A DNA stretch of 63,549 nt, filler included, from Parasitella parasitica NRRL 2501 (GCA_025201805.1; 5 parts of 5 records of this genome joined end to end with filler, not necessarily neighbours in it); one strand, 5' to 3'; shown: positions 28,533 to 55,717, counted from the first letter of the whole stretch. Program-made: numbers and translations. The notes: generated from the letters alone by a model not told the origin.

Positions 28533-28905
28533 TGCGCTACTGTCTTGAGTCTTGAATGCAGCAAATACTTGCGCTGTTGTCTTGAGTGTGCCAAGTTCTT
28601 GAGCCAATATGTTCGGTGCAGCAAAGCCTTGCGCTGCTATCTTGAGTGTGGCAAGTTCTTGAGCCACTGTCTTGAGTGCAGCTTATTATTACGCTGCTAT
28701 CTTGAGTCTTGAGTCTTGAGTCTTGAGTCTTGAGTGTAGCAAATTCTTGAGCCACTATCTTGATTGCAGCAATAATCTTGAGCCGCTGTCTTGAATGCAG
28801 CTTATTCTTGTGCTGCTATCTTGTGTGTGGGAAGTTCTTGCACCACTGTTTTGAATTTGGAGCCTTGAGTGCAGCATAATTATTGTGCTGCGGCCTTGAG
28901 TGTAG
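28533..28905. repeat. Degenerate tandem repeat of about 29-30 bp with an embedded (TCTTGAG)n run
   Basis: Recurring GCTGCTATCTTGAGTG / AAGTTCTTGAGCCAC units and about five TCTTGAG 7-mers at about 28699-28735. Confidence 0.85.
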
Positions 28906-30268
28906 TAGAAGCTGTTTTCTAAGGTAAAGAGGTAGTTAGTGATTTGGTTGAATACATGCAAAATATGTATACATCTTATTGTTATCAATACCAGGGGATT
29001 TCACCGCGGGCGTCAGTAGAGCTATGTCCTGAGAGCAGTTATTGTCTAATGTCGAGAAGTAGTCATCGTCATATTTGGTACGTAAAATTGTGAATTTGCG
29101 CTTAAAATCTTGTCAATCTAGTCTTTCAAAAAGAGCAGAACGAAGCCATCGAAACTTTAGCTTCTCTAAAGAAATATTGTTTTTACAGTAAGTATCTTGT
29201 CATACAAATATACATATACGTTATGTGCAGGTAAACAAGGTAATTGGATCATAACAACCAAGTGTTGCTAGTAAAAATTTTAATTTGAAGAAGCAATGAA
29301 AATTAGCATTAGGACGCGTAGAAGTGCTGCTATATAAACGTGACGACTTTCCATTTCCAATATCATTCATGGCCTGTCATTTATTGTAAAGAACTAGTTT
29401 TGTTTCCTTATCAAGTCACAAAACATTACGAATTGACAAAACACTATGTAATGATAAAATGCTATGTATTGAAAAAACAGAAAAATGTCCCTGTAACTAT
29501 GATTGTTTCTTGCCTTGCTGGTTGAAGCAGCTCTCTCGGTATTTGCAACCATTACGGCTGAGATAGTATGCGCATTACTACCAAGTGATCATACCACTAA
29601 AGCCTTAGATATTTTGCACAGTGAATATGGTTAAAAATACATTTATATGCACAATGTGCATAATATAAAAACAGCTCATGTGCTTATTGTTAAGCTTGTG
29701 GAATCGGTATAAATTGTTATATGGAGTCACGGAAAAAAATTATAATAAAAAAACAATAAAGTCAACTTGATAAGGTATAGGTTTTATTATCAAATCGACA
29801 GGTGTATAAAGCTCTCGTTCATCTACTGGCCAGGTAGATGAACCTTTATATACTTAAACTGTGGATAAATGTTCTACTCTCGCAATTTAACATGTACGAC
29901 AATACTGCGTAACTAGCATCTTAACTTTGTGCTAACCTACATATCAGCAGTCTCAAGATAACTTAAATATATTTGAGTCAGGAGATAGACTTTACCCGAG
30001 GNNNNNNNNNNNNNNNNNNNNNNNNNNNNNNNNNNNNNNNNNNNNNNNNNNNNNNNNNNNNNNNNNNNNNNNNNNNNNNNNNNNNNNNNNNNNNNNNNNN
30101 NNNNNNNNNNNNNNNNNNNNNNNNNNNNNNNNNNNNNNNNNNNNNNNNNTAATGGTGCCATCTCTAGCTTATATCTTATATAGTATAAATCTGTATTGCA
30201 CATCTTATTATCTGTGCGCATATGTAGTTTATATCAATTTAAGGTAACTGGATGAATCTAGTAGTGGA

Positions 30269-30823
30269 ATGCAGATCATCATGGTGAATGTATTTCACAA
30301 CTTTGCTTATTTTCCACTACAAGTTGCTTACAAAATTATCGACATGTTAATTGAACAATCATCGCCAACTATTTTGAGCTTCTTGCTACAAGTTAAAGGC
30401 CCTTGTGACCCTTATATCTGGCACTTCTTAGGGCGTACTTTGTCACCTAGACTTTGGTTCGATGTCGCAATAATTTATAACATCAGTATTTTATGGAAAA
30501 GTAAACGCCTTCCGCATTTTAGTTTCGTAGATGCAAACTTTGGACAGGACAATTCGGAATCAACTGTCAGGCTATCAATAAATAGAGGTACTATGTGGGT
30601 AATTACCGACCATGACATGCATCACAGTGCAGATATCGTGTATGAAGACATTATGGGAGATAGAGGCTTATATATTCCTGAAAATAATCGTGTAGCTTTC
30701 TTGCCGCTGGACGAATACACTTACTTTACGTACGATGATGCGAAAGAAAATATGAATATATTATTAGAGCAATCTGAAAAATTTCATAGTAATAAATTTC
30801 TTCTTAAGAAGCTAGAAACTTGA
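30269..30823 (+). CDS. Orphan intronless protein (copy 1)
   Basis: 184-aa open ORF in AT-rich DNA, duplicated at 31785-32261; N-terminus weakly F-box-like (FAYFPLQVAYKIIDML). Confidence 0.6.
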   Translation: MQIIMVNVFHNFAYFPLQVAYKIIDMLIEQSSPTILSFLLQVKGPCDPYIWHFLGRTLSPRLWFDVAIIYNISILWKSKRLPHFSFVDANFGQDNSESTVRLSINRGTMWVITDHDMHHSADIVYEDIMGDRGLYIPENNRVAFLPLDEYTYFTYDDAKENMNILLEQSEKFHSNKFLLKKLET

Positions 30824-31784
30824 TTTCTATTGCAAAAACAATTACCTACTAAATCAAAATTTCTCCAAGCGTTTCTTATAGTCTCAATTAATATATTCTT
30901 GTTTTTATCCCCTCTGATCCGAACAATGAATAAACTTACAGCCGAATTATGTATTTATTGATTAGGTTTTTTTTATAACCATATTAGATATTTTTTCCGT
31001 TNNNNNNNNNNNNNNNNNNNNNNNNNNNNNNNNNNNNNNNNNNNNNNNNNNNNNNNNNNNNNNNNNNNNNNNNNNNNNNNNNNNNNNNNNNNNNNNNNNN
31101 NNNNNNNNNNNNNNNNNNNNNNNNNNNNNNNNNNNNNNNNNNNNNNNNNNNNNNNNNNNNNNNNNNNNNNNNNNNNNNNNNNNNNNNNNNNNNNNNNNNN
31201 NNNNNNNNNNNNNNNNNNNNNNNNNNNNNNNNNNNNNNNNNNNNNNNNNNNNNNNNNNNNNNNNNNNNNNNNNNNNNNNNNNNNNNNNNNNNNNNNNNNN
31301 NNNNNNNNNNNNNNNNNNNNNNNNNNNNNNNNNNNNNNNNNNNNNNNNNNNNNNNNNNNNNNNNNNNNNNNNNNNNNNNNNNNNNNNNNNNNNNNNNNNN
31401 NNNNNNNNNNNNNNNNNNNNNNNNNNNNNNNNNNNNNNNNNNNNNNNNNNNNNNNNNNNNNNNNNNNNNNNNNNNNNNNNNNNNNNNNNNNNNNNNNNNN
31501 NNNNNNNNNNNNNNNNNNNNNNNNNNNNNNNNNNNNNNNNNNNNNNNNNNNNNNNNNNNNNNNNNNNNNNNNNNNNNNNNNNNNNNNNNNNNNNNNNNNN
31601 NNNNNNNNNNNNNNNNNNNNNNNNNNNNNNNNNNNNNNNNNNNNNNNNNNNNNNNNNNNNNNNNNNNNNNNNNNNNNNNNNNNNNNNNNNNNNNNNNNNN
31701 NNNNNNNNNNNNNNNNNNNNNNNNNNNNNNNNNNNNNNNNNNNNNNNNNNNNNNNNNNNNNNNNNNNNNNNCAAAATTATCGAC

Positions 31785-32261
31785 ATGTTAATTGAACAAT
31801 CATCGCCAACTATTTTGAGCTTCTTGCTACAAGTTAAAGGCCCTTGTGACCCTTATATCTGGCACTTAGGGCGTACTTTGTCACCTAGACTTTGGTTCGA
31901 TGTCGCAATAATTTATAACATCAGTATTTTATGGAAAAGTAAACGCCTTCCGCATTTTAGTTTCGTAGATGCAAACTTTGGACAGGACAATTCGGAATCA
32001 ACTGTCAGGCTATCAATAAATAGAGGTACTATGTGGGTAATTACCGACCATGACATGCATCACAGTGCAGATATCGTGTATGAAGACATTATGGGAGATA
32101 GAGGCTTATATATTCCTGAAAATAATCGTGTAGCTTTCTTGCCGCTGGACGAATACACTTACTTTACGTACGATGATGCGAAAGAAAATATGAATATATT
32201 ATTAGAGCAATCTGAAAAATTTCATAGTAATAAATTTCTTCTTAAGAAGCTAGAAACTTGA
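31785..32261 (+). CDS. Orphan protein (copy 2, 5' end in gap)
   Basis: Near-identical to copy 1 with a 3-bp deletion (WHFLG vs WHLG). Confidence 0.55.
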   Translation: MLIEQSSPTILSFLLQVKGPCDPYIWHLGRTLSPRLWFDVAIIYNISILWKSKRLPHFSFVDANFGQDNSESTVRLSINRGTMWVITDHDMHHSADIVYEDIMGDRGLYIPENNRVAFLPLDEYTYFTYDDAKENMNILLEQSEKFHSNKFLLKKLET

Positions 32262-32399
32262 TTTCTATTGCAAAAACAATTACCTACTAAATCAAAATTT
32301 CTCCAAGCGTTTCTTATAGTCTCAATTAATATATTCTTGTTTTTATCCCCTCTGATCCGAACAATGAATAAACTTACAGCCGAATTACGTATTTATTGA

Positions 32400-32837
32400 T
32401 TAGGTTTTTTTTATAACCATATTAGATATTTTTTCCGTTATTTTGCATATCAAATAATCTGGCTCTGTCGCATTTGTCTCTCGAAAAGATTGAATGTATC
32501 TGTGTGCTGTAGAAAGGGAGAAGTTGTTTGCCGCAGCTGCTTCGCGATAAGTCATTTTGCTAACAAAATAGTCATGATATAGACACTCCAAAGAATCCTT
32601 TGTAATTTTCTTATACCGACCACGTCTACCTTCTCTGTGGAGATTTGCTTTTAAAATTTCTTTATCACAACGCCCACAACGATTCTTCTTAGGCTTTTGA
32701 ATTGTTTTTACCTTGGCTTCTTCAAGGGCCTTGCTGTAAAGTTCTGTGAAGTTTGATGGAAGCTCTTCATCAGATAAAACTTCTTTCAGTCCTTTCAAGT
32801 AATCCAACATATTATTGAATTTTTTTATTTTCTTCAT
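32400..32837 (-). CDS. Small HTH protein, Tc1/IS630-transposase-type DNA-binding domain
   Basis: GRRGRYKKIT...SKMTYREAAAANNFSLSTAHRYIQ plus a CxxC motif; the 3' end is also duplicated at 30962-31001. Confidence 0.7.
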   Translation of the reverse strand: MKKIKKFNNMLDYLKGLKEVLSDEELPSNFTELYSKALEEAKVKTIQKPKKNRCGRCDKEILKANLHREGRRGRYKKITKDSLECLYHDYFVSKMTYREAAAANNFSLSTAHRYIQSFRETNATEPDYLICKITEKISNMVIKKT

Positions 32838-33105
32838 TATAAGAAATTAATAAACAAGCAATGTTTTTACCATCGCTCAAAATCAGGGCAAAAAATTAAT
32901 CGATATCTCCTAAAAGCAGCTTGATTTTTGCTGAAAGGAGTTCGATAGCAGAAATTTGGTTTGCTCTGAAAACATATTGGTCTTCGGACTGGGTAGCTGA
33001 TCCGTTACTGTTCTAATATGTTTAAGGAATTTTGAGATACGACGGATTTTCATCGATATTTCAAGAGTTTATTTGATTTGAAAAGACATATTAAAAGGTA
33101 CTTAT

Positions 33106-33438
33106 TTATGGTCTATTATTATAAACAGCTTTTCTAACCATTCTAACGTAGCTTGAGCCAGTGCTAGAGTTGATTCCACTAAGCCTTGATGCTCTAGCAG
33201 CTGGCACGCCTTGCACCAAAGTCATGTACAGCAAAAGTCTAATTTTATCCACGCTATACTTGCGCCGACAATTTCCATTGAAGATGATCTTCAAAGACTT
33301 TTCTAAAAGAATGCGCTCTGGGCGAACTAGCATGCTGTAGATATAAAACATCTTCAGTTTATTAAGGACAAAAGTGCAGTTTTCGAGCATCTTGAAGTTA
33401 TTTTGTATTGATAAAAATAATAACAGGAACTTTTTCAT
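33106..33438 (-). CDS. Small HTH protein, same HTH class
   Basis: RRKYSVDKIRLLLYMTLVQGVPAARASRLSGINSSTGSSYVR; true start may be an internal Met. Confidence 0.6.
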   Translation of the reverse strand: MKKFLLLFLSIQNNFKMLENCTFVLNKLKMFYIYSMLVRPERILLEKSLKIIFNGNCRRKYSVDKIRLLLYMTLVQGVPAARASRLSGINSSTGSSYVRMVRKAVYNNRP

Positions 33439-33675
33439 TGACTTTATTTAAATAATCAAGTATCGAAATCCACATTAAGTAGGTTGCTGTCTCAATTACT
33501 GTATAAACTATAGAGAGAAAAATAATTATGCAAGTTAGATAATACTAAAACATGTCTAGAAAAAATAAGCTTTTGATGGCATAAAACATGAAATAAACTA
33601 TTTTATATAAAAAGAAGAAAACGTCGCTTTGAAAACTTCACTTTCTTTCATCTTACATCTTACATCTATATCAAA

Positions 33676-35203
33676 ATGGTTCAAATCACTTTTTCTTCAA
33701 TTAATAAGCTTGAAGTCGCTGTCATCCCTGGGCCTTCAAGAGAGACGAGCAAGCCCCAAGAGGTACTTATCAAGCATGCTGGGATCTCCCCATTCAGGAT
33801 CCCAGATTTTGCATTTGCTTACGATCACTTCGTAACCTATGAATTGGCAACAGTTTACGAACGAGAGACTGTGGTCGTTTCACCTTTTACTCCCATTGTT
33901 CCTGCTGGTGGTGCTGGTGCTGTATTTGCCGTTACTAACGCTGTTGATGGAGCTGCTACTGGTTCCAACCAAGACACACTGGCCAAAGACTTGGAAGTTG
34001 CCTCAAACCTTGGAACTTCTGTAGAATCCCCTGCTGACGTCGCTATGAATATCTTCTTTCCAGAAGGTAAAAGACCCAAAATGGAGGACAAAAAAGTTCT
34101 CATTAAAGAGCTTTTTACTCTCGTTTTCAATGAAAAACTCTCAGATACTGATGCTTGCAAAAAGCTTGACATCAAGTACACTACAGGTAACGTTTTTTGG
34201 AATAAATTGAGACGTATTTTAACTAACTTGCATGTTTATAGGCAATAGATGGTGCCGAGAAGTTCGCAGCGTCATGAAGGCGAGAAACATTGTCTTAAAC
34301 CAGCCAACTGTATACTCGGCTCAGGAGCAAAAAATTATTCAAGAGAGGTCTGAGAGCATCGTGGTTTCTCAAATAAAAGGCAAGTCTGAGAAAAGGCCCA
34401 AAGAAGACCAGCAAGCCGCTCCCTCCACTGGTCATTTCGAAAGAAAAATTTTCTTTCAACATCATCAGTTCCTTAGCGTTTTTTTTACCAAGGACGAAAT
34501 GGCTAAGGTGAAAGTGGCCATGGAAGCCTTGAACAATGCTTTCGGCATTGGTGCCGCATTGTCAACGGTGCACGCCCATCTGAAAAAGAACTGCAATCTT
34601 ATTATCAAGAGGATAGGCTCACCACCAGCATTAATGGATTTTGAATACGCCGTCAACACCAAGCTTCTTCCGGAATATTTGGTGGTGACGGCCGCTTCTT
34701 TTTATATGTACCAAAGAGAAAGGTTTGGGTGGAGTGGCCCAGCAAGCAAGTCCCCGAAGCGCTTTTTGGTCAATGAGGGCGGCATTATGTTCACGGTGTT
34801 TGCTGCCTTTTCCGGGGACGGTATCTTAAAGGTAGCGCTCAAAACGCATTTGAAGAAGGGTAGAAAGTCGATCAACGTCTACCTCCAATTTTTGGGTGAA
34901 CTACTTGTCTCACTGGAGAAGACTCAGGTCAATTTGGTGCTTGACAGCAACTTTCATAAGCAGCTCGCATCAGGCGACCAAGAGATGCTGGTAAACGATG
35001 GCCACAACTTTGTGGAGATCTTGAGCAATGACCCCAGCCTTCGACAGTTTTGGGCTGGTTTCACCAGCAATATCCCTCGTTCCTGCTTGACTGCCGAAAG
35101 CACCTTTGCCGACCGGCTGAATGGAGCAGCAAAAGTTACAGGAAGCGCTTATTGTGGTGAGTTGGTGAAAGATCTACAGAAGAGGATTGGGGAAATATTG
35201 TAA
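33676..35203 (+). CDS. Tc1/IS630-like transposase derivative, 490 aa, catalytic triad degenerate; intron 34187-34241
   Basis: HTH EKLSDTDACKKLDIKYTTGNRW, second HTH LSTVHAHLKKNCNL, LVVTAASF...RFGWS (canonical VFIDES), FTVFAAFS.DG, NLVLDSNFH, DPSLRQFWA (canonical SPELNPIEQFWS); TATA-like sequence at about 33604. Confidence 0.8.
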
Positions 35204-35524
35204 TGTGCCGTCTTTTCTTCTCCTTTTTTTATGCCATTTTTTTTATGCCCCTTTTTCATTTGCTTAATATCTAACTCTATGATTTTTTCTTTTACTTTGA
35301 CAACTTTATGTATAATACTTTATCGAAAAACACTTCACAGTTTGAAACATGTTATGAAAAGAAGTGAAAAATAAAATAAGATTAAATCTAATTTCTTCGC
35401 TGTTATCGAAACATCGTAATGCTGCTATTTTTACAAATTTGATGTTGTTTTCTACAAAGGTAAGAATGAATCATTCTTGAGGGCTAAAATTGGGTTCTCC
35501 TTAATAGAACTTCCTTCCAATCGG

Positions 35525-35895
35525 AAGACTTGTCTAATTTATTTGAAATCCTGTCCAAGTAACTTGAAGAACAGTCCAAACTACGTGAAATTCTGTCCAA
35601 ATATCCTGAAGTTCAGTCCAATAAATGTGAACAATACAGTATCATAACTAAAAAAAATATTTTTAGAAATAAAATATCTATTTCCTCCAATTAAAATTGA
35701 GAAATCGTCCAAAATAGTTTCCATATAAGGATTGTACCACTTAATGATACTGAAATCCACTTAACAATACTGAAATCCACTTAACAATACTGAAAATCTA
35801 CTGGTATTAGAAATTAAAAAAAGACAAACAAAGTTAATAATACTGAAATCCGGAAAATGAACCAATGTGATAGCTCTAACTTTTCAGTATTATTA
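35525..35895. repeat. Two short tandem arrays: about 21-bp TGAA...GTCCAA units and 20-bp CCACTTAACAATACTGAAAT units
   Basis: About five GTCCAA-type units at 35528-35630; three 20-bp units at 35737-35795, another AATACTGAAATCC at about 35838 and an inverted TTTCAGTATT at about 35882. Confidence 0.8.
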
Positions 35896-36325
35896 AATCA
35901 AAAAAAGTATAAATGCTGAGCAGTCTGTAAACTATCTACAAGTTACTTTTAACTTCTTATTTATCTATCAATATTAACTATGCAACCAATTTTACCAGCT
36001 ACTCAACGGAAGATGCGTCTTATTAAGCGTGATTCTCCTGAATCTAGCTCGGAATCAGAACAAGTGCCTGAATCTACCTTTTTGCCAATTGAGAAGGTGG
36101 TTCGCACCGAAGAAAGTGGATCTTCGGTTCAAAAAGCTCGCCGTGGTCGTCCTAAGAAGGCTCGTGTCGAAATGGTCCCTTTGGAATCCTCTCAAAGTGA
36201 AGCCACTAGTGCTGCTCCTTCTGCCATTATTCCTACTAATACAGGTGCTTCCCAGCAAGTTGATGAAGTTGTTCTTGCACTTCAAGACATTTTGAAGAAC
36301 AAGCGCCANNNNNNNNNNATTAACT

Positions 36326-36703
36326 ATGCAACCAATTTTACCAGCTACTCAACGGAAGATGCGTCTTATTAAGCGTGATTCTCCTGAATCTAGCTCGGAA
36401 TCAGAACAAGTGCCTGAATCTACCTTTTTGCCAATTGAGAAGGTGGTTCGCACCGAAGAAAGTGGATCTTCGGTTCAAAAAGCTCGCCGTGGTCGTCCTA
36501 AGAAGGCTCGTGTCGAAATGGTCCCTTTGGAATCCTCTCAAAGTGAAGCCACTAGTGCTGCTCCTTCTGCCATTATTCCTACTAATACAGGTGCTTCCCA
36601 GCAAGTTGATGAAGTTGTTCTTGCACTTCAAGACATTTTGAAGAACAAGCGCCAAGTACCGAATTGGCTTATCGAATGCCTTTGGCTGTTTGGAAGGTAT
36701 TGA
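36326..36703 (+). CDS. Small AT-hook protein (partial duplicate at 35980-36308)
   Basis: ARRGRPKKAR AT-hook in a low-complexity 125-aa ORF; TATAAAT at about 35908. Confidence 0.7.
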   Translation: MQPILPATQRKMRLIKRDSPESSSESEQVPESTFLPIEKVVRTEESGSSVQKARRGRPKKARVEMVPLESSQSEATSAAPSAIIPTNTGASQQVDEVVLALQDILKNKRQVPNWLIECLWLFGRY

Positions 36704-37174: not shown

Positions 37175-38347
37175 GTGCAAAACTCTCTCGGGCCAAGTAA
37201 GCTTTCTAAAATGCTAAGAGAATTTCACCACCTTCGTCACGATGAGTGCGAGATGAAATACTTGGATTCGTTGTCCACTTTTGTTGAAAGACAAGAAAAA
37301 TCCGGATTTGGTGATACAAATCAATACAAGAATGTCCAATTTTCGACTTTTGAAGACAAAGACAAGTATGCTGACTCCGTTCCATCAGGAGGGTACCTCA
37401 CATACGTATATTGTTCAATGATTCAAGATGCGAGGCCCCTAATGAACCAAATGATTTCCTTGTTAGATGGTGTTGTCTTGAAGGCCGACCACTCATTCAA
37501 GATTATCGATCATATTGCAAAGTTGAACGAAATGCCAATATTCACTGCTCTATATACGGTCTGTAACGAATACGAAGAAATAAGGTGCCAATCCCTTGTG
37601 GCAACCAAGCATCATAAAGTCATCTAAATTCAATTTACGCTGGGTTGGTTGCTTCGTACAAGTATTATGGGCATCAATTACTAAAATTTGTTTTCACAGA
37701 CAACGTTGATGGTGACCAGGCATTTTTAGAATCCATGATTCCAACTTTGAAAGACAACGTTACTCACATTGCAAGAAATAATGTTAATTCGACGCTTTCA
37801 ACTGATCCTACACTTACCACTACTATTAGCCATTCAGACGCAATAAATGAAGATATTGAGATATCTCCAAGCTCTGCAGCTTCAACACTTTCAACAAGCA
37901 TCTCAACTAGCACCGCAAGGTTGCAAGAATACATGTTGCCTGAAGATGTGCGGGTCCACGTTTTGGAAACTATTACTGATATTGATGCTACCATCAACGA
38001 TCTTTTGCGACTAACTCTCAATAGCAGAATTTTTGTTGGTTTTGATTGTGAGTGGTATTTCAACCGAAGTCCGTATATTGTTGGCCCTGTGTCTTTGATC
38101 CAAGTTGCTCATGGAAAATGCGTATGGTTATTGAGACTTAGTCAAATACCAAGGAACAAGTTTCCTAAATCTCTCAAGCTATTCTTGGAGTCTAACAAGG
38201 TTGTAAAAATGGGAAGAAACGTTTCTTCTGATCTAAAGAAGATTGAAAAAGACTACGACTTTGTTGAAGGTAGTCTTCAAGGATCACTTGATTTAGCTTC
38301 TTATTGCAAAAGTAAAGGGGTTATTCGCAGGGCTACTGTGAGCCTTG
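37175..38347 (+). pseudogene. MULE-like DDE transposase fragment with a WRN-type DEDD 3'-5' exonuclease domain
   Basis: LKADHSFK, LYTVCNEYEEIR, FVFTDN; stop at 37627; then VGFDCEW...VSLIQVA...LKLFLES..VVKMG..VSSDLKKI; runs into a gap. Confidence 0.7.
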
Positions 38348-39961
38348 NNNNNNNNNNNNNNNNNNNNNNNNNNNNNNNNNNNNNNNNNNNNNNNNNNNNN
38401 NNNNNNNNNNNNNNNNNNNNNNNNNNNNNNNNNNNNNNNNNNNNNNNNNNNNNNNNNNNNNNNNNNNNNNNNNNNNNNNNNNNNNNNNNNNNNNNNNNNN
38501 NNNNNNNNNNNNNNNNNNNNNNNNNNNNNNNNNNNNNNNNNNNNNNNNNNNNNNNNNNNNNNNNNNNNNNNNNNNNNNNNNNNNNNNNNNNNNNNNNNNN
38601 NNNNNNNNNNNNNNNNNNNNNNNNNNNNNNNNNNNNNNNNNNNNNNNNNNNNNNNNNNNNNNNNNNNNNNNNNNNNNNNNNNNNNNNNNNNNNNNNNNNN
38701 NNNNNNNNNNNNNNNNNNNNNNNNNNNNNNNNNNNNNNNNNNNNNNNNNNNNNNNNNNNNNNNNNNNNNNNNNNNNNNNNNNNNNNNNNNNNNNNNNNNN
38801 NNNNNNNNNNNNNNNNNNNNNNNNNNNNNNNNNNNNNNNNNNNNNNNNNNNNNNNNNNNNNNNNNNNNNNNNNNNNNNNNNNNNNNNNNNNNNNNNNNNN
38901 NNNNNNNNNNNNNNNNNNNNNNNNNNNNNNNNNNNNNNNNNNNNNNNNNNNNNNNNNNNNNNNNNNNNNNNNNNNNNNNNNNNNNNNNNNNNNNNNNNNN
39001 NNNNNNNNNNNNNNNNNNNNNNNNNNNNNNNNNNNNNNNNNNNNNNNNNNNNNNTATTTGCTATAAATTTAAAAATTAGCTTACAGGCGCAGATTGTTCA
39101 AAATTCAACAAAAAGTGCCTCTCGGTATTGAGATTTTGGTATTTTTGCAATTTTTTCCAAAAAAGTAAAAAAGAATGAACATCACCATTTAGAGTAATTT
39201 TTTTGGCTTCTGGCCCAATAGAAATCTGATTTTTTTGATTGGCTGATTATTTTAATTTTTCTGTGGTTATTATACCGTTACAGTATTTTGTTTGTACATG
39301 TTTGCTTTCAAATGTTGAGATGACCTCTTGTAGCGGTGTTTTTCTATTGGCTTCTTTCTGCATGCTTAGCCCAAAACATTGCATATTGTGATGACCGAAT
39401 GCATATTTTAGCTTCTTTGTTAGCTCTCCTTGGCCTTTTTCTTTTGTTTTATCTATCTTTTTACAACTTTATGAGCTGGTATTTTAACTTAAAAAACATA
39501 CAACGTTAGCACATTTGTGCCAAATATAAGTACATTATACAGAGTAATAACATCTTCATGTATCTGTAGTTTCATCACAAGAAATTGTAGCTTCTTTTTC
39601 ATTATAAAGAAAAAGCTTGCAGTATAGCTTGGTAAGAAGAAATGATACGCTGCATATTTTATATATTGCTATCATTATGGTGTATGTATTCGAGTCTATT
39701 CTAACAAACTATTAATCCTTTTCTCAATAATATATAGAGGCTCTACTCAGTTTAATCTTTCATTTGAGAGCATGGTATTACTATGTGCATTAAATTGTTT
39801 GTGGCAACTAAAAAATGACTGACTACTTTTACTGCTGAATATAGGCAATAGCTAAAGATGATGCTATGTACGAAAATTGTTTTTGCATTATACGTCGTTT
39901 GGGTGTCAATGTCAAGTAGTTTTGAGTACTTTTTGGCTTGCTTCTTTTGCTTTATTAATAT

Positions 39962-42112: not shown

Positions 42113-45100
42113 TGCAATAAGAATCAAAGTCAGATTGCTTATTACTGGTTGGACGGCGCCAGGATGATCTAGCTTATTCACTTGCTGCGACTGATTATAA
42201 ATACCATTATCAATATCATTAGTAGTATCATTAGTAGTATCATTAGTAATAGCAACTGTCGCAGCAAGTAAATATAATATAAATACCTTCCTAATTTTTT
42301 ACGAATAAACAGGATCCTTTTTTTTTATCGAAACACTGTTGTATAATTGTTATTGCATCATAACAATTATCTGGTCTGTTATCTGAGTTATTCTTGTATC
42401 GTTTGTAAGCCACAAATATTACATTGGTGGAGAAGTCTAACATGGCAAATCAACCTGGTTCAACTAACTCGTACGGTTCCTCTGCTGAAGGAGGAGAGGG
42501 AGAAGGTATCTCACGTCGTGCGTCTACATCAAACTCTTTTCGTCCATCCGCTGTTAGTTCAAATCAATCAACATCGAATTCAGCTCCGTCTGGTTCCGGT
42601 GATCCAAACATTTATGCATCTGTGACTGGTACTACTACGTCGAGATATTCAAAGACTTCACATACGAGCATACCGACAGTGATGAACTATGGTAATGCAG
42701 TGCCTGGCGGTTCTTGTGCTGACGATAGGGTCCCTGCTCCTACAAGCTTTGCCGAATTTGTAATGAACAACCCGGACGAACATCATCAAAGCTTAAGTCA
42801 AAATGGAGAGGAGGCGGTATCCGATGTTCCTTTTGTCGTGGGAGAACAATTGGTGCTGTACAAATTATTAATCAAAGAATATAATGATTGTATGCCTATG
42901 TGCATGGTGGGCGTCAAGCCATGCTGGAGGAAATTATTGCTACTGAAAGGTCCTATATTGCTGTCCAACACTCGGTCCTACACGTTTCTCCTATGGAACG
43001 GCAAAATATTACAGTAATACTTAGTCATTACGCTGTGAAAATCGAAGAAATGAAAGAGCCAATTAGAGGGTTTGATGGAAGAATCGAGATCACCCGTACA
43101 CAGATATGCGATACTCTGGTTAATGCACTTCATAAGATCCCTGCCGAATCCTTGTTGCAAGTGGTTCAAGAATGTCAATGGCCAAATGAAGACGTGTCCA
43201 GAGATCTCGAACTACCCCTAGACGTTGCTCTGATATACCGCGGAACTTACAGGTTACCGAAGAGAACGGTTTTACCTGACGGATCAATTGATCAAGCTGC
43301 TGATGATGCTGCTGCTCGCATCAAGGAATTAGGGGCTATAATACACAAGCTAAGTATCGGATTGAAAGGCGAGATTATTCCGGTAAAAAAGGAAGGCGAC
43401 AAACCCACGACAGTTCTAAGTGATGTCAAACCTACAGAAAAGAAAATTGATTATATAGAAAGAAGAAAACGAACTAAGATTCCAAAGTTTAATCAAAGAG
43501 CAGCCTCAGAAGCTCAACAATGGCTGAACAATTATGAACATCTATGCGAATATTAATTTCGAGGATGATGAAAAGGTGGCGGAATTATCGGTGGTACTAA
43601 CAGATAATGCATTGAACTGGTATTTGAATATTGATAAAACTGGTTGGTTTGAGGTAAAGGAGGCATTTCTACTACAATTTGGCGGTGGTAATGATCCCGC
43701 GTTGGTGGCATTAGCTAAATTAAAGAAGCTGCGACAAGGTCAACAAAGTTCCATCGCAAGGGGGAAGCGGTGTGGGAGCTGTGTGCAATAAAATTGGGAT
43801 CAATTTTATGTGAAAATAAAAAAAAAGTAAAAAAATAAAGCCAAAGAAATACAATTATAGTCTTTCCACCTTTATTTTCGATTAAAAGAAAACTGAAGAA
43901 AAGATACATGCTCTTTAAGAGAGCTTGTATTTATACTACTTTGTAAAATTGCCTCACTACAGTGAGAGTGCTTATTTTACAGCTTATTTGAAGAATGACT
44001 TTTGTTGACATTCTCTCACTTGTATTGTAGTTGAGATTTCGATATGTTGGTACTGAAATTGATACTATGGTTTTGGGCAGGATTGTAATATTTGAGGATC
44101 CTGATTATTTCTAATGCGACTGAGCTTTCCTTATTGTGTAATAAACAAGCTATTTCTGGCATCTAGAATTATTGCAATTGTTTTAACAATTGCATTGTTT
44201 ATACATGTTTGGAATTTGTTTATTTGTAATCATGAGTAGCGTTGTTCAACATTAGCATGTGCCAAGGTTGTAGGAGATTGTACTTTGATCAGGAGTGCAA
44301 GCCTCTACCAACACTTGTAAATGTTTACTTGTGCTTTTCATGTATTTCTTTCTTGGATGGATCAGCCATGATCCATCTGGATTTTATTTTAATGTAATTG
44401 TGGTGCTATATAATAGGTGCCATTTCATTACACTGTGCAATTCCTCTCGGGAATCTTACAATTGAAAGCGGAACAGTTAAAGGATAAGATAATCCAGACA
44501 ATCCTAAAAGAAGACGTCAAGAAACCATATGCTTTTAAGGACGACATTCTCTGGTATCAATACAAAGACGGCTCGATGGTTCCAATCACTCCTCAGCCCA
44601 TGGTCAAGTCGCTATTAAGAAGCGTGCACAATCTCCCAACTGGTGGCCAACCATGATTGACGATTTAAATCATTGGATTAGAACATGCGAAGAATGCCAA
44701 CGCTACAAGATCCGAAATGATTCGGCGGTACCACCGATGAAGCCAATTATACCTTCAGGAATAGGCAAAATCTGGGCTCTGGACACAGCAATGCTCCCTT
44801 TATCGACAACTGGCAACAGATACCTGCTGATAATGTGTGAATACTTGAGCAAATGAACGATTGCGCTACTTAGGACACTGACCATATAGCACAAGCGCTA
44901 TTATATGAACTAGTGTTAAAGTTCTCGGTTCTAACAAGATTGATCACAGATAATGGCTCTTCGCTGGTGGGTGATGCTATGACTCAGGTATGGGCAAGAC
45001 TAGGCATTAAACAATCGTTGACCTCGGTGAAACACCCACAGACGGATGGACTAGTAGAACGTATGAACAGAACACTAAAGACATCGCTTGCAACTGCTGT

Positions 45101-46375
45101 TCGTAACGAACCAAGAAAATGGGATCCATATTTACAATTTATCACGTTCGCCTACAACACAGCAAAGCATGCCTCAACTGGTTTCTCTCCTTTCCAAGTA
45201 ATGTTTGGTCGACAGCCGGTGCTCCCAAACAAACAAGGTTTGATCCTTCCTACTTTCAAGACATACGAAACGGAAACCTCGGGTAAACTACTTGAATAAG
45301 TACATATATATACATCTACCAGTACTGCACGAAAAGGTACTTCAAAACATCAAGACAGCGCAAGGTTATCAGAAGACTTTTTACGACAAAGGCAAACGGG
45401 TCAAATATGATTGTAAGATTGGTGATTTCATTCTTCGCAAGAATCTGGAGAAGACCTCGTTCCCGAAAGAACTTTGGATAGGCCCTTACATCATTCCCAG
45501 TAAGAACAACAGGGAAAGAACCTCCTACAAGATCGTCAAAAGAGGAGCCTCACATGAACATGTAACCACAGCAAATGTACGACATACGAGGCCATACCAT
45601 GAGGATCAAGATGCGAAGGCCACTCTTCTTGAGGAGGAAACAATGTAATTAATAAGAATCAAATCCAGATTGCTTATTACTGGTTAAACGGCGCTAGGAT
45701 GATCTAGCTTATTCACTTGCTGCGACTGATTATAAATAATACCACTATTAATATCATTAGTAATATCATTAGTAATAGCAACTGTCGCAGCAAGTAAAAA
45801 TAATATACAGTAAATTCCTTGCTAATTTTTTATGAATAAACAGGATTGTTTTAATATACAAAATAGATATACAACAATTAAAACTGGATACATTTATTCG
45901 TATATAAAAAATAAGATGATTGTTCTATACACAACATTTGCCTAGACTATTTATACTTTTCGAGTGCTGACATCGTCGGTTACATGCTTGTGGAATTGAG
46001 ACTTAATAAACTTGTACCAGATAGAACCAATTACTAGCCATGTGCTGCTAGTACAAGTAATCGTAAACCAGTTATTACCAGAAGGAGACAGGAAGGATAG
46101 TGGTCTTGAGAAAGAGTATAATCGCCTTGTGGTATAAAGGATTTCTAATGAGTGTAACCATGGTATAATACTTTTGCATAATTGTGAGAATACCCAAGTT
46201 GGATCTCAGGCACAACATCAACTCAACAACCCACCTCGCTTAGTCTTTACATCCTAAACAAGGATCCTTTTTTTTATCGAAACACTGTCATTTCAATATT
46301 ATTACATCATAACAATTATCTGGTCTGTTATCTGAGTTATTCTTACTATATCGTTTGTAAGCCACAAGTATTACA
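42113..46375 (+). mobile_element. Ty3/gypsy element B, internally deleted and degenerate
   Basis: 5' LTR 42113-42423, PBS TGGTGGAGA (complementary to a tRNA-Ala 3' end), frameshifted gag about 42442-43750, integrase remnants about 44430-45648 (TDNG, HPQTDGLVERMNRT, WIGPY), PPT GAGGAGGAAA, 3' LTR 45644-46375; CTAG on both flanks; no protease or RT visible. Confidence 0.9.
45847..46260. repeat. Solo LTR, family C, nested in the 3' LTR of element B
   Basis: 5-bp TSD AGGAT (45842-45846 and 46261-46265); matches 39962-40369. Confidence 0.93.
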
Positions 46376-46380
46376 CCTAG

Positions 46381-48474
46381 GTAGTCCTTTCAACACCATA
46401 GACATCAGTCTGGCGAAGCTGCTTGGTAGCGAAGTGAATGCATACAACGATTCATTTGCCTGGAATGCTGTTCTCTTGCTGCTGCTATCCTCGCTGTTGA
46501 GCGGTAATTGCCAAAATTCTGATTTCAAGTTGCAGGGAGAGAAATACTTGTATCCTCTAAGCTTTTCTAGTAAATCCGGGATTAATGGTAATGGGAATTC
46601 GTCTTTGATCACCATTTTGCTCAGGTTCCTTTATTCTACGTAAAATCTGAATGTTCCATCTGGCTTCTTGATTAAGATAACTGATGAACACCAATTACTT
46701 TGGCTTGGTACAGTGACTCCTTTTTGAAACATAACCTTTACTTCCTCCGCAATGGCTGCATTCTCTGCTGGTAATCTACGAAAGTCCCTAGTTACAATCG
46801 GTTTAGCATCTCCCTTATTGATTGAATGTTTGTACGGTGCGGTTGTCTTGTTTTGCATTGCAGTATTACTGGTTAGGTTTGGGAACTTTTTCAGTATCTC
46901 ATCCACTGTCGTTTCCATATTGCTCATGAATTCCGCCTGATTCTTTTTGCTGATCTTCTTTTCCTTGGCTTGGATAACGATATCCTCTTGGTCCAGCCAA
47001 TCCATTCCTAGTAGAATGATATCTTCAATTTGCTGTTCTACCACGTACACGTATGCTTTATTTGCTTTGTTCCTTCTTGTTGAATGTAAAATTCATGATT
47101 GCCTTCTTTGTTGTGTACTGTTGGGAGTTGTTTCCGTACGAGATAGCGATACCTGGTGTTGATATAGTTTCCAAACCTAGTTTCTTTGCAATCGTCTGTT
47201 TGATTGAACTAATGGTTGATCCAGTATCTACTAGCGTTTTGCGCATGAAGAACTGTTCTTCCTTCTTCTTGACGTCCACCTTGAATCTGTTTCCAGTGTG
47301 GAATAATTTTTCCGCCTCCTGGCTATTGTTGATGATTAAATGAGCGAACATTTTCATCCTCTTCGCGTTGCACCTGTTGAACGTTCTGTTCCCTCTTCAT
47401 ACTCCAGCAATTCTTACTGATGTGTCCCACCTTCTAGTGGCACTTGAAGCATTTGCGTGTTTCCTTACGCTTATTCATCTTCTTGTCTGGCCTGCTATCA
47501 AACTTTTTCTGGTTGCCCTGCTTGCGTTGGTAGTTCTGTTAAGCTGGTGCGTATTCTTCTTTGGCATGATTCAGTTCCGGTTTGATCGGTCCCATGTACT
47601 GTATGTGTCTGCTTGATTGTTGGCTAAAGATCTCTGTCATAGAACAGGATTTGTACATTGGTTTACCCGCGGAATTGTACAACTTTAATGGCAATTTCGT
47701 GATATAAACTTTAATAAACATTTTAGTTACCTAAAGGTATGTTCATAAAAATCTTGCCTATAAACAAGTCCATAAATTTTTTATATCTACAATACACCAA
47801 TTAATTTTGTAGTTGTCAATTTCTATCTTCATCAACATCTACTTTCAATCTTTCTATCAGGTTTATTGGTCAATCATACATCACACCATCATGGTATATT
47901 TCTTTATCTTTAAATTCCACATTTAGTATAAATAGCAATAGTTTATTCATAGCCATGAGAAGATCCTCATCCTAACATAAAATAAAACAACATCTTAAAA
48001 AGATTTTCACAATCTCTCTATGTCAGTAGCCACACACTCTAATGCCATATCGTCCAAGTTAGTTACTCTGGACAAAATCACAGCTCGTTCCAGATCTGAC
48101 TTCAGCTTATCCCTTAGATAATCCAGTTGAATGTTCGGCAATAATAGACCTGCTCTCTGTAAAAGCGTCTTCAACTGTAATCCGAACACCTTCATCGGCT
48201 TGTTGCTCTGCTTGTACGTTTTTAATTCGTTAAAAGCTGCCAACATCGGAACATCTCCCAATGCGTGTTGACGCAAGAATTCTTGTTTGACTTTCTCCCA
48301 TGATTGTGCTATGGCCGGATCCAAACCTATGTACCAGTCTAGGGCTGTACCTGTGAGGAACCCCACTATCTCTTTCGCTTTTTCTTCTTCCGTGAATCCC
48401 AAGAAGTTAGCCAGTATTTCGTATCGTTGAAGCCATTTCTCCGCCTCGAATGCTGATCTTTTCTCGTATTGATG
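46381..48474 (-). mobile_element. Ty3/gypsy gag-protease-RT remnant (element D)
   Basis: Gag AEKWL..YE...LTGTALDWY, CCHC knuckle (CFKCH..GHISKNC), protease LVDTGST, ILLGMDWL, RT WCSSVILIKKPDG.FRF, DEFPLPLI; many stops and frameshifts; AT-rich insert about 47670-48005. Confidence 0.9.
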
Positions 48475-48833
48475 TGTCAATTTCCCAACCGGAAGTCAAA
48501 CTCAAGTAAACTCAATCCTGAACACAATTCAGGAACATATCCCAATGGATCATGTTCCTTATTTATAACTCAACATGACATGTTCATGGATAATAGATAC
48601 GATCTATCGTTCCATTCTCTAAATCACACCATGTCTCACACTTGTATCTTATTCTCCCATCAGTCCACTTAGATTCACTAGTATATAAACCATCATTTCT
48701 TCCATGTAATAAACGAGATCTTTACCTGATTAATTCACAACCGTTTTATTTGAATAATTTCTCATTCTGATAAATCAAGTGATATGTATTTATAGATCAA
48801 GATGTATAATTATTTTGCCTTGAAGGCTTGACA
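48475..48833 (+). repeat. Putative LTR (family E)
   Basis: TGTCAA...TTGACA termini, TATATAAA and AATAAA inside, followed by GGTT (PBS-like). Confidence 0.55.
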
Positions 48834-48859
48834 GGTTCATGACAGATACCAAGCTCAGA

Positions 48860-50516
48860 CCGCGCAGCTGGCTCCTATAACCAAACCATCTAAGCTGCAT
48901 GCACTGCGTTTAGACACAGCTACATTGTTCGCCACACTCTACTCCAAGAAAGTTGCGCACAGAACTTACATCTACGACTTTGAAGGAGAACCTATTTTAT
49001 CAGCGTCAAAAATTATTGTGTCTTTGGTAGTCTTCTTAAAATCGCCATCTATATAAAGTGCGGTAGCATCAAGTTATGGACTCAATTTTGCCCAACATCA
49101 ATATATATTGCCAGGACTCAAGGTTGTACGCATCTACGGTATTCAAAAACCAAAACGATTCAGAGGCAGTCCAACGGCAACTGAAAAGAGGTAATGACAC
49201 AAGACATGGGAGAACTAGAAACTTTTCTACAAGCGAAATTGAAGATGCAGCAGATAGAATTAAATGATTTTCTACTGAAAGAAGAATGTGATCTTGAAGG
49301 AGCTTATGAGAGTGGAAAAGGCCAAGCTGAAGAAGCGAGATCTTACAAGAGATTTACTGCATACGAAAATGTAGATTTCTGATTTAAGACAGCAAATTTA
49401 CGCTGCAAAGCACCCGTCTTCACTGCAAAAACAAAAGAAGTTCATTGTAGATGGCACTGTTTGCCACAAAAAAGCTGAAAGTTGCAGGCTGGACGCCCAA
49501 TTAGATTTGGAAACGATAGCTTTCTGTGATACGGACAACGGCATAATTAAAATTACAGAAACACAGCGTTCAATATCAAGATGTTCGAGTATCATTTAAG
49601 CTTGTATAATCGATTTCAAGTTTTGGAAAAAGTTTAACTCTACAAAATACAGATGATTCAATGGAAAATGGCAGATATAGATGATGTCAATCCTACAGAA
49701 AATGAAAACAAAGATTTTCTCTATCTCCCAAGATCTCTTTTGTTGGCGTCCGAATAAGTAGCTGAAGGCAGTCAGGTCGAGGACCTATACAAATTCTTTG
49801 AATGAATACAAAAAAACTTCAGCATTGGGACAATATGAGATGGCTAGTGAGTAGGAGCAGGCTGAAAATAGTTTGAAAAACTGTCATACAGTCGAAGATC
49901 TGGACACTACGCTTTCCATTCACATTCAGCATCGCTCTTCTATCCGCAATTTTTACTATGGAAATTCAAATGCAAAGAGGTCGAGAAGGCTTGAATTGAC
50001 CAAATCTACATTTTATGATACCATAGCAAGCAAGGAGCGACGCTTTATGGGTGCTCAGCAATCTTTCATGTATATCGGTGATCGTGGGCACAAATTTGGC
50101 TCGGCTATTAAAGTCTATCAGCGTTTTGGTGAACTTTGGGAAGAGAAAAGACACGCCAGGTACACATCCCCGGTTATCACTAATGAGCATAACTTAACTT
50201 GTCTTTTCTGCTTTTCAAAATTAGCCCATTCAATCTTCTCCAGTATTCATCACAAGCTCAAGACGGTGGAAGAGTCTTTTGTATGTCTAAATCAAGAATA
50301 TCCTAGTAGATTCAGCGACGGTTCAGAGACAAGATTTCAACAATGGCAATTGGTTTGGCTGACCTGGCGATGACTTTATTTGGGGTGACATTCCCCTGCT
50401 TCGACTCAGTGAGAACAACAACAAAATCATCAATGTTTAGCAAGACAGCTCGCAATTTTTTGAACGGAAAACATCGTTCAAAGGGCTCGCTCGTCGATGA
50501 TGGTAATACTCTTTAG
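48860..50516 (+). pseudogene. Fanzor (eukaryotic TnpB-like RuvC nuclease), degenerate
   Basis: RuvC-I AFCDTDNG (about 49520-49542), IGDRG..GSAIK, RuvC-II ITNEH, Zn finger CLFC...C.N, RuvC-III RDKISTMAIGL (RD at 50325-50330), LFGVTFPCF, last frame ends TAG 50514-50516; several stops and frameshifts. Confidence 0.82.
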
Positions 50517-52094: not shown

Positions 52095-53482
52095 TTAAAA
52101 CTGACAAAGTTTAGCTGCATCAATCATAGCAATGGATGCACCCAAGCACCACCCAGTTTCAGCCCCACGGATTTTTTTGGCCGTGCGTACTAGTCTATCA
52201 TTGGGAATATCGTAACCAAACTTTAGTAAATTGTGAATGTAAGTTAAATCCAAACAATAATCAGGCTTTTCTTGTAATGCTTGAAGAGCACCTGGGACAT
52301 GCCGGAACGGTTTAGTTTCACCACGGCATACGCGATCCGTTAATTCTCCTAATTCGCGAACGCTGAATTCAAGTGGCATACCCAGTGGTTGTGTCAAGTC
52401 GTAAAAGTAAGAAAACACATACAAATCTCTATCTTTGAATGTATCTGTAATAGGTGGCTGGTAGACACCATCAAAAGCGCATGGTGCTAATTCACACATC
52501 CTATCCTTGTTGAACACTTTTTCTACAATACTACGGCACTCTGCATGACCAGCTCCAGTACCCAGCAGTTGAATCATAGTCCCATTATTCAAAGCAATTT
52601 CCTCTTTATGATCTCCAGGTAAACAAGGGTGATACACTTTGCCTGTTAAGGCAGCCTCTTCTTTCCACATGTCGACTAATTCCGATTTAATCTGTTTACG
52701 AGCCTCATTCAAGCCGTATCCCAAATAAGAATGCTGATATAAGCCAAATGTGCTATTTTGATAGTCTAATTCATATTTGTGTTCACCCTCTGACATGGAT
52801 TCTGTTGAAGGAAATGTTGGCTCAAACACAATCTGAGTTGATGCACCGCCTAAATCAAATACAGCTGCCGATTGTCCACGTTGACTTTTCTTGAGTTTAC
52901 CCAACAAATAATTGACAGTAATCCAAGCATAAACACCTGGCAGTCGAGGATTTCTTTAGAATGCGCATCGATACATGTGTCTTTTTGTTTATTGTTTTAC
53001 CTTCATCTTTGCCTTCCATAATTTCGATCCCATTCTCTCTGGCGATGGGGAATGGGTATGTTTCCAAATATTTGCGAACACTTTCAAGAATGCGATTGCT
53101 TTTATCGGCACCCAGCATACGTAAGCCTGCTGTTGCTTTAACAGCAATAGGGGTACACTTTCGATATTCTTCGGGCACGCTCTTTACAGCAATTTCCATT
53201 AATGGCTTCAAAGAATTTGCGGCTCCTTCAGCGTCGTCTTTATACGAAGAAAGTCCAGGTTCCAACATGTGAAATACTTCATCCTCCAAAACTGGGTCAT
53301 TGCATATATTGAATCGATATACATGAACACGAGAGCCTGATGATCCAGCATCAATCATGACTGCATATTCAGTTGACGGTTGGCCATCTGTTGTGGCTGA
53401 ACACAGTGTATTACCACTAGCATTTAATTGATCCAACGATGGCACATTGGAATCTAAAGGTTTCTATTATTAGATTCTTTTT

Positions 53483-53553
<71 letters not shown>

Positions 53554-53786
53554 GGCATCATTCTAGCAGCAATACCTTTTTGGGTGTTATTTGAAATGTA
53601 TTTTGTAGTCGAAGGTGAGTACATCAGCCATAAGAATAGGATGAAGAATGTAATCGCAGCAAAGCACTTCCAGAATAAACTCTTCTTGGTCTTGATAGAA
53701 GCCATCATATCTTCAGTTTTTCCTAAAGTAGAGTTTTGTCTCTGACGATAACTGTCCAAAGAAATTACTACAGGGAATTCAGACAC
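52095..53786 (-). CDS. GDA1: Golgi guanosine diphosphatase (GDA1/CD39 apyrase), 3 exons
   Basis: N-terminal TM anchor, [38 protein letters not shown]. Confidence 0.94.
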
Positions 53787-54209
53787 TTTTTTTTAAAAAA
53801 TATGTGCTATAGAAGCGTTCTTTTGTGGCACAACAATGAATATAAAATAGAGGAAGAAAAAAGGGGAAATAGCGAGAAGGGAGTTTGTAATCAATTTATC
53901 AAAGAAAAAACCAATCAATACAAGTATTTTATGGAGAGATAAAAGCTCGAAATTTAGTCCTAAAAAATTATGGAATACTAATAAATTAGACAGCTACCTT
54001 AGATTTACAACAGACAAAGCTATTGCTTAGCAGATGTTGAAGCTTTATTCAGAAATAATGCGCATCTCTAGGCAACAAAAAACTATGACGGTTGGCTGCT
54101 GTGTTACTTAATTTGTGATACTTTTTGTTGTTTTCCGCAACACAAAGAGGCGGCTCTTTTTTCTTCTTCTTTTTGTTTGGANNNNNNNNNNAAAAAAAAA
54201 AAAAAAAAA

Positions 54210-55698: not shown

Positions 55699-55717
55699 AG
55701 AACAAACAAACTTTTTA

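Follow-up and report, generated by a model that had tools for sequence, protein, structure and literature searches.

A candidate low-copy family of non-catalytic Tc1/IS630-derived proteins with linked helix-turn-helix paralogues at a locus of Parasitella parasitica

Introduction

What kind of system, if any, is encoded by the cluster of small genes at positions 30269-36703 of a 63,549-nucleotide (nt) stretch of DNA from Parasitella parasitica NRRL 2501 (GCA_025201805.1)? This stretch, called the window below, consists of five parts of the genome joined end to end with filler. A preliminary description of it had seen two small genes for stand-alone helix-turn-helix (HTH) proteins, a divergent spliced open reading frame (ORF) of 490 amino acids (aa) taken for a catalytically dead transposase, an AT-hook gene and an orphan ORF, all flanked by repeat arrays. 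The core of that picture stands: the ORFs, the intron and the arrays are all present; part of the extent of the cluster is an assembly duplication. From sequence comparisons we judge it narrowly probable that the locus belongs to an undescribed, low-copy, non-catalytic Tc1/IS630-derived family with linked HTH-only paralogues and a conserved oriented motif in its flank, a family whose probable mode of action is binding and which this species can do without.

The domestication of transposases has been thoroughly documented for animals, plants and fission yeast. Domesticated Tc1/mariner and pogo transposases include SETMAR/Metnase, CENP-B and the Abp1/Cbh proteins of Schizosaccharomyces pombe, which are conserved, syntenic and under clear purifying selection. 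The literature that we searched contained no description of a family of non-catalytic Tc1 derivatives in Mucorales or early-diverging fungi. A Tc1 family of Mucoraceae has been described, Tc1-MP1, which is of the DD34E type and measures 1,688 bp with terminal inverted repeats (TIRs) of 141 bp, and homologues of it have been reported in P. parasitica (PMC9977792).

Results and Discussion

The spliced gene and its ancestry

The 490-aa ORF, referred to here as the big gene, is made up of the following parts.

33676-34186, plus strand: exon 1, variable N-terminus and first part of the first HTH (HTH-A); from the ORF, the family alignment and an RNA-run contig
34187-34241, plus strand: intron of 55 nt within HTH-A, GT..AG, with a CTAAC branch site; from the sequence and a contig of data set X7
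34242-35203, plus strand: exon 2, end of HTH-A, second HTH and a predicted RNase H-like Tc1/mariner catalytic fold without the DDE triad; from homologues, an AlphaFold2 (AF2) model and X7 contigs

The plus-strand ORFs 33676-34248 and 34232-35203 connect in frame through this intron, as had been proposed. Contigs from four public data sets (X1, X2, X6 and X7) were compared with window positions 30151-36140, and X7 was taken to be RNA, which we infer from two spliced joints and an adapter remnant. One X7 contig omits exactly the 55 nt of the intron, and X7 contigs span 33727-33936 in exon 1 and 34240-35302 in exon 2 and the 3' end. The big gene is transcribed and spliced as a defined mRNA. The public gene models in this place are fragmentary, with P0022 ('BD408DRAFT_426682'), P0001 and P0002 having 68, 120 and 85 aa.

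The two exons were searched separately. Exon 2 found no match in Pfam or in a word-indexed protein search, and none of ten homologues scored above the Pfam cut-off. An exhaustive HMMER search of exon 2 against 1.84 billion representative proteins returned 17 matches, including the window's own fragments. These comprise a 43%-identical fragment (P0003), a 540-aa protein of Mucor bainieri that is 31% identical to the exon 2 product (P0004, KAL9536586.1), about eight further proteins of 288-470 aa at 23-32% identity, and short fragments. The similarity of P0004 extends to the 63 N-terminal residues of exon 1 (E 3e-8), and it can be aligned from residue 1. Another of the 17, P0016, has a cluster mate, P0021, that is a true DDE_3 transposase (Pfam E 2e-26). 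Members that carry organism names are from Mucorales, namely P. parasitica and M. bainieri. The protein clusters of the family have 1-4 members on 1-4 contigs, and its full-length ORFs, of 316-540 aa, are still intact at 23-31% identity. Three members, P0006, P0010 and P0007 (loci L007, L010 and L012), are mutually less than 50% identical and all derive from sample SRR25220052; judging by these sequences, one genome or sample can contain several diverged paralogues.

Descent of the 490-aa protein from a Tc1/IS630 (DD34E-type) transposase, as the preliminary description had supposed, is supported by several sequence and model comparisons. The family profile matches the catalytic domain of the Sleeping Beauty transposase SB100X (E 0.009). 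Moreover, when the AF2 model of exon 2 (predicted local distance difference test, pLDDT, 71) was compared with the PDB by Foldseek, the best matches were all Mos1, SB100X and SETMAR/Metnase, with E between 1e-5 and 1e-3 and a probability of 1.00. The two HTH segments of the big protein align to the N-terminus of P0016 and the true transposase P0021, and DDE_3 proteins are among its homologues.

We then read the catalytic columns from the alignment of the family to P0021 (DD34E). The residues of the window protein at the D, D and E columns are Thr, Asp (offset by one column) and Arg, so that the triad is absent in the alignment. Across the family the first Asp is substituted and the triad Glu is lost in most members, every member aligned there has lost five residues of the conserved loop before the Glu, and none of the acidic columns is invariant. 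The earlier claim that the big protein is a catalytically dead Tc1/IS630 derivative is supported by this alignment and by the modelled fold.

Like Tc1-MP1 and other DD34E Tc1/IS630 transposons of Mucoraceae and Rhizopodaceae (PMC9977792), the protein has N-terminal HTHs followed by an RNase H-like fold, its gene body is Tc1-sized, and it comes from the same host group. In contrast to these transposons, the window family has lost the first Asp and the triad Glu and has a shortened loop before the Glu; moreover, the window locus is single-copy and lacks TIRs, its gene has an intron, and HTH-only paralogues lie alongside. The single-copy state was read from depth across 32.3-35.3 kb in three assemblies, for copies of at least 90% identity.

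HTH-only ORFs beside the big gene

Two small ORFs on the minus strand lie upstream of the big gene and are divergent from it.

33106-33438, minus strand: HTH-only ORF of 110 aa, HTH-A paralogue; from tblastn, identity to HTH-A and an AF2 model
32400-32837, minus strand: second HTH-only ORF, 145 aa, probable diverged HTH-A paralogue; from a sub-threshold Pfam match, hhalign and BLASTP
33098-33151, plus strand: RNA-supported GT..AG intron overlapping the 3' end of the minus-strand 110-aa ORF; from an X7 contig

Both ORFs are present as they had been described, and their kinship with the HTH of the big gene is visible only in comparisons within the family. A Pfam scan of all window ORFs gave a single sub-threshold HTH match, HTH_29/HTH_23 at E 0.016 for 32400-32837, and none for the others. 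In a word-indexed protein search nothing was found for 32400-32837, and for 33106-33438 only the window's own 68-aa model was recovered. The expectation that profile searches would recover the HTH is thus borne out by the comparison with family profiles and not by Pfam.

By sequence, 33106-33438 is a clear paralogue of the N-terminal HTH-A of the family. It matches the HTH-A of P0006, P0009 and P0012 by tblastn (E 1e-6 to 7e-6), shares 22-38% identity with HTH-A segments from other loci, and is modelled by AF2 as a four-helix HTH (pLDDT 90.6). Foldseek with the HTH-A model found generic HTH proteins only (KorA, sigma region 4), at E 0.14 and weaker. The second ORF, 32400-32837, is probably a diverged HTH-A paralogue, as suggested by hhalign against the HTH-A profile (E 2.2e-5, probability 76%) and by BLASTP against a small ORF of the related locus L008 (E 7e-5). 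An Atlas feature search gave HTH families as a lead for it, and an X7 contig covers 32477-32860. Since tblastn found no remnant of a catalytic domain after either small ORF, we regard both as stand-alone HTH-A ORFs. A weak match to exon 1 was also seen far downstream in the window, at 44581-44820 (E 8e-5), adjoining a decayed retroelement integrase ORF at 44913-45299.

The second spliced joint of X7 falls at the end of the 110-aa ORF. The contig joins 33095 to 33150, and the intron has GT..AG borders only when read on the plus strand; the public model P0022 assigns this joint to the minus strand and thereby gives it non-canonical borders. The plus-strand spliced RNA may represent an antisense transcript or else belong to the big gene as a long leader.

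Related loci and a motif after the stop codon

We examined 12 related loci (L001-L008 and L010-L013, of which L002-L004 are one P0003 locus from three samples), on contigs 1.5-8 kb long, together with the locus of a true transposase, L009, for comparison. The layout of the window recurs in L008, where two small minus-strand HTH-A ORFs lie upstream of the big gene and divergent from it. One of these (126-578) matches the 110-aa ORF of the window (E 9e-10), the other (751-1266) is HTH-A by hhalign (E 1.2e-7), and a tandem array with 37/75-nt units lies between the small ORFs and the big gene. L007 has a 113-aa HTH-A ORF downstream of the big gene. Counting the window, extra HTH-A segments are present in four of the five loci that have enough flank, and tandem arrays with units of 16-37 nt adjoin the big gene in L005, L006 and L008. 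The relatives at which HTH-only segments, short arrays and the oriented motif described below recur are distant, with a protein identity of 23-31%. Co-occurrence of the genes elsewhere, which had been proposed as a check on the whole cluster, was found for HTH-only segments with the big gene; the AT-hook and orphan ORFs have a counterpart in no related locus. The product of L002 891-1748 was considered as a relative of the AT-hook ORF and rejected, having no meaningful similarity to it.

On reading the 3' flanks of the family loci, repeated words resembling TTATGCC were noticed. In an unbiased count, TATGC ranked first among 5-mers in the 150 nt that follow the stop codon, with at least two copies in five of seven loci and a frequency about 23 times that of the background in these sequences. 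Four loci fetched later were used as a test, and the cluster was found in three of them. Over all 11 loci, the 500 nt after the stop hold 40 forward copies and one reverse copy, with the consensus YTATGCY, and a cluster follows the stop in eight. Because such clusters are rare elsewhere (three in the 29,443-nt piece of the window that carries the cluster, 28242-57684, and none among the nine genes of L002), YTATGCY is not a general gene-end signal. In the window the motif occurs as follows.

35222-35256, plus strand: two TTTATGCC copies, the window's YTATGCY cluster; a 14-nt array found by Tandem Repeats Finder (TRF)
33575-33583, minus strand: one inverted copy, TGGCATAAA, about 95 nt upstream of the ATG of the big gene

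The TTTATGCC copies lie at 35230 and 35244, 27 and 41 nt after the stop, and lie within the transcribed 3' end, as the X7 contig extends to 35302. L005 likewise has an upstream inverted copy similar to TGGCATAAA, at its position 5707.

Short repeats are also present in the comparison locus L009, where 22-nt tandem repeats with a CAATCTGCGCG core (2251-2329) lie 130-230 nt after the stop of the true DDE_3 transposase; these are probably subterminal transposase-binding repeats. The window locus resembles L009 in having short repeats close after the ORF. Since a true transposase has such repeats, the post-stop arrays of the family may, by analogy, be an inherited transposon end structure.

This raises the question of whether the family might still be mobile, with a non-canonical active site or moved in trans by transposases of the Tc1-MP1 type, the YTATGCY repeats being end-binding sites. 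The distance from the inverted TGGCATAAA at 33575 to the TTTATGCC copies at 35230 is about 1.66 kb, which is the size of a Tc1 element; P0009 retains D, D and E; and one sample yielded three diverged paralogues. However, the motif is direct and one-sided, being almost absent upstream, the inverted match upstream of the window gene is single and, at 9-11 nt, too little for a TIR, and TIRs were not found in 28-40 kb. Moreover, the locus is single-copy at 90% identity or above, and the triad is lost in nearly all members. We consider continued mobility very unlikely.

A proposed binding protein without catalysis

The explanation that we favour treats the locus as one member of a small, low-copy and highly diverged family derived from Tc1/IS630 (DD34E-type) transposases. 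Its protein keeps two HTH domains and the RNase H-like scaffold and would no longer transpose, acting instead through sequence-specific binding without cleavage. The YTATGCY repeats would be the likeliest binding target, the HTH-only proteins might be partners or competitors at the same sites, and the outcome could be autoregulation or repression of related Tc1 elements.

Such a protein would resemble SETMAR, CENP-B and Abp1/Cbh in being transposase-derived and low-copy, in lacking element mobility and in its predicted DNA binding. Unlike those proteins, the copy described here segregates broken alleles, and its family evolves very fast. The KP repressor of the P element is a truncated, transposase-derived repressor that arises from internally deleted elements of an active family. 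As with KP, proteins that consist of a DNA-binding domain related to the transposase could occupy the sites of the full-length protein; unlike KP, the small ORFs here are separate, diverged genes beside a non-catalytic relative, and repression is only proposed. The family would be a compact case of domestication, in which a candidate target motif lies within 3 kb together with the protein and its truncated paralogues, and for this reason the binding hypothesis is directly testable.

A stronger version would make this a conserved three-part system of Mucorales, composed of the non-catalytic Tc1-derived protein, one or two HTH-only paralogues and an oriented YTATGCY array at the 3' end of the big gene, in which a conserved recognition helix (S-T-x-x-x-Y) reads the motif in order to control related Tc1 elements, local chromatin or the protein's own mRNA. 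On the present comparisons we hold this version to be tentative and rather doubtful.

Alleles, and points that weigh against function

Several observations weigh against a functional binding family. P0009, alone in the family, retains acidic residues (D, D and E) at all three aligned catalytic positions. L001 and L002, the closest relatives, and L010 lack a YTATGCY cluster, and the window is the weakest instance of the motif, with two copies only. Since the motif is transcribed with the 3' end and strictly sense-oriented, its role could lie in RNA rather than DNA. In a tree of 17 HTH-A segments none of the 14 branches was supported, so that the small genes form no supported single clade, and the HTH-A segment downstream of the big gene in L005 is interrupted by a stop. 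The sole spliced transcript over 33106-33438 is antisense to that ORF, and its sense expression is doubtful.

The alleles of the big gene add to these points. The listed differences from the other data sets, a partial list, comprise nine nonsynonymous and four synonymous changes. In X7, an additional AT behind 34633 leads to a stop about 20 codons later, and in X1 and X7 one G is missing at 34973. Broken alleles are therefore found in two of the four other data sets; X2 and X6 match the window at the frameshift sites, and the window allele is the form that remains in frame with the family alignment up to its end. Because intact and frameshifted alleles coexist, the big gene is probably dispensable in P. 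parasitica. The preliminary description had offered, among others, two signs by which a functional module could be dismissed, a ratio of nonsynonymous to synonymous divergence (dN/dS) near 1 and a lack of expression. The first is partly seen in the within-species differences and frameshifts of the big gene; the second does not hold for that gene, which X7 contigs both cover and splice.

The main rival explanation is plain fossils: a region rich in transposons would have accumulated partial duplications and old Tc1-like insertions that have no function, with ORFs that are open since they are short or recently dead. The frameshifted alleles, the roughly neutral balance of changes, the antisense splicing over 33106-33438, and the interrupted HTH-A segment and shortened C-terminus of L005 would all follow, and so would the decayed long terminal repeat (LTR) retroelement close by at 42-50 kb, the high-copy repeats on both sides and the short tandem repeats after the stop of the true transposase relative L009. 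However, neutral decay would not be expected to leave at least eight intact ORFs of 316-540 aa at 23-31% identity, nor an oriented cluster of a 6-7-nt motif at the same place in eight of 11 loci. In addition, the family is low-copy, unlike transposon debris, and both small ORFs are free of indels in the four other data sets, which says little at about 1% divergence. We regard a wholly fossil origin as possible, if unlikely.

Assembly gaps and the extent of the cluster

The coordinates of the cluster include two runs of N with duplicated flanks.

30331-32439, no strand: gap 1 with flanking duplicate; from self-comparison and contigs of X1, X2 and X6
35973-36654, no strand: gap 2 with flanking exact duplicate of 336 nt; from self-comparison only

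When the window was compared with itself, 30331-31001 proved to equal 31772-32439 except for a 3-nt CTT indel, and 35973-36308 was 100% identical to 36319-36654. At both gaps the right contig opens with the bases that end the left contig. In X1 and in X2 a single contig connects 30785 directly to 32227, and a single X6 contig connects 30426 directly to 31865. Because the contigs of these three data sets hold one copy each, we conclude that gap 1 and its duplicate were created by scaffolding. The sequence around gap 2 bears the same signature, which suggests the same origin. The CTT indel, at 30427-30429, corresponds to one Phe codon of the orphan ORF and distinguishes the two copies; its long form is found in X1 and X2 and its short form in X6, and the difference is possibly why the contig ends stayed unmerged.

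The ORFs next to the gaps are accordingly written twice, the orphan ORF (30269-30823) again at 31785-32261 and the AT-hook ORF (36326-36703) again at 35980-36308. Since the flanks of the gaps are duplicated, the orphan ORF has one real copy and the AT-hook ORF, by the signature of gap 2, very probably one as well. The true span of the cluster is about 4.65 kb, compared with 6.4 kb as written (about 1.8 kb less), and with the duplicate of gap 1 removed the orphan ORF and the 145-aa HTH ORF are convergent with about 140 nt between them. For users of this assembly, sequence beside runs of N may be written twice and gene counts inflated. Other assemblies also swap or omit the intergenic segments 32863-32902, 35365-35496 and 35772-35828 (38-130 nt), which are structural polymorphisms around the genes.

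Flanking ORFs, arrays and neighbourhood

The remaining features of the cluster are the following.

30269-30823, plus strand: orphan ORF, 184 aa, not part of the unit; no Pfam match, no relatives
36326-36703, plus strand: ORF of 125 aa with one AT-hook core (RGRPKK); no counterpart in related loci
28549-28854, no strand: upstream array, 30 nt x 10; no link to the genes found
35543-35896, no strand: downstream arrays, 21 nt x 3.8 plus TTAAYRATACTGAAA copies; from TRF and a motif count

The preliminary description had gathered the orphan ORF, the two HTH genes, the dead transposase and the AT-hook gene, together with the 20-30-nt arrays, into one unit, interpreted as the cargo of a large mobile element or as a chromatin system. 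The five ORFs do lie close together, all are open, and parts of each are covered by contigs of the RNA-like run. On the other side, the orphan and AT-hook ORFs accompany the big gene of no relative, and their apparent duplication is an artefact of assembly. The orphan ORF has no Pfam match, and an Atlas search found no family for it and gave a very poor predicted fold (model pLDDT 0.35); the AT-hook ORF has no meaningful Pfam match. The arrays are present as described, and short arrays recur beside relatives; the named 20-30-nt arrays, which have no counterpart in the related loci and no YTATGCY in their unit consensus on inspection, are not the conserved repeat. The upstream array 28549-28854, likewise without YTATGCY, is separated from the genes by a run of N at 30003-30150. 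No inverted repeats of at least 30 nt were found in 28-40 kb, and none bracket the genes at a minimum of 14 nt; 28-40 kb showed neither TIRs nor any other limit of a larger mobile element, and the suggestion of mobile cargo is not supported. We consider a five-ORF unit the least likely of the explanations, and highly improbable.

Downstream of the big gene, TRF found tandem arrays at 35543-35631 (21 nt x 3.8) and 35737-35795 (20 nt x 3). The 15-mer TTAAYRATACTGAAA occurs in four direct copies and one inverted copy within 156 nt (35741-35896), that is, five matches against 0.07 expected, in an array that precedes the AT-hook ORF by a short distance. From about 35634 onwards the sequence is multi-copy in the genome, at about six times single-copy depth; loose ends occur at 35634-35636, and depth in the RNA-like run peaks at 35751-35950. 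The TTAAYRATACTGAAA region looks like a small repeat element or a cluster of promoter sites.

At the other end of the cluster, the start codon of the orphan ORF lies in a 70-nt segment (30230-30299) that is represented by about 30 contigs per assembly at about 200 times single-copy depth, and that is present in the RNA-like run too. All copies of this repeat have A at 30262, and scans for tRNA and Rfam families found no match in it.

Beyond the cluster, ORFs at 37175-39066 have a weak match to a 3'-5' exonuclease (DNA_pol_A_exo1, E 0.0018) and are interrupted by a long run of N from about 38344; they may be one larger gene. A link between them and the AT-hook ORF, which ends at a possible GTAC donor (36655), is conceivable. 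Farther downstream, 42424-50373 holds a decayed LTR retroelement with fragments of rve (integrase) and gag, and 52095-56629 carries ordinary genes, for a GDA1/CD39 nucleoside phosphatase, a protein kinase and a NIF-like phosphatase.

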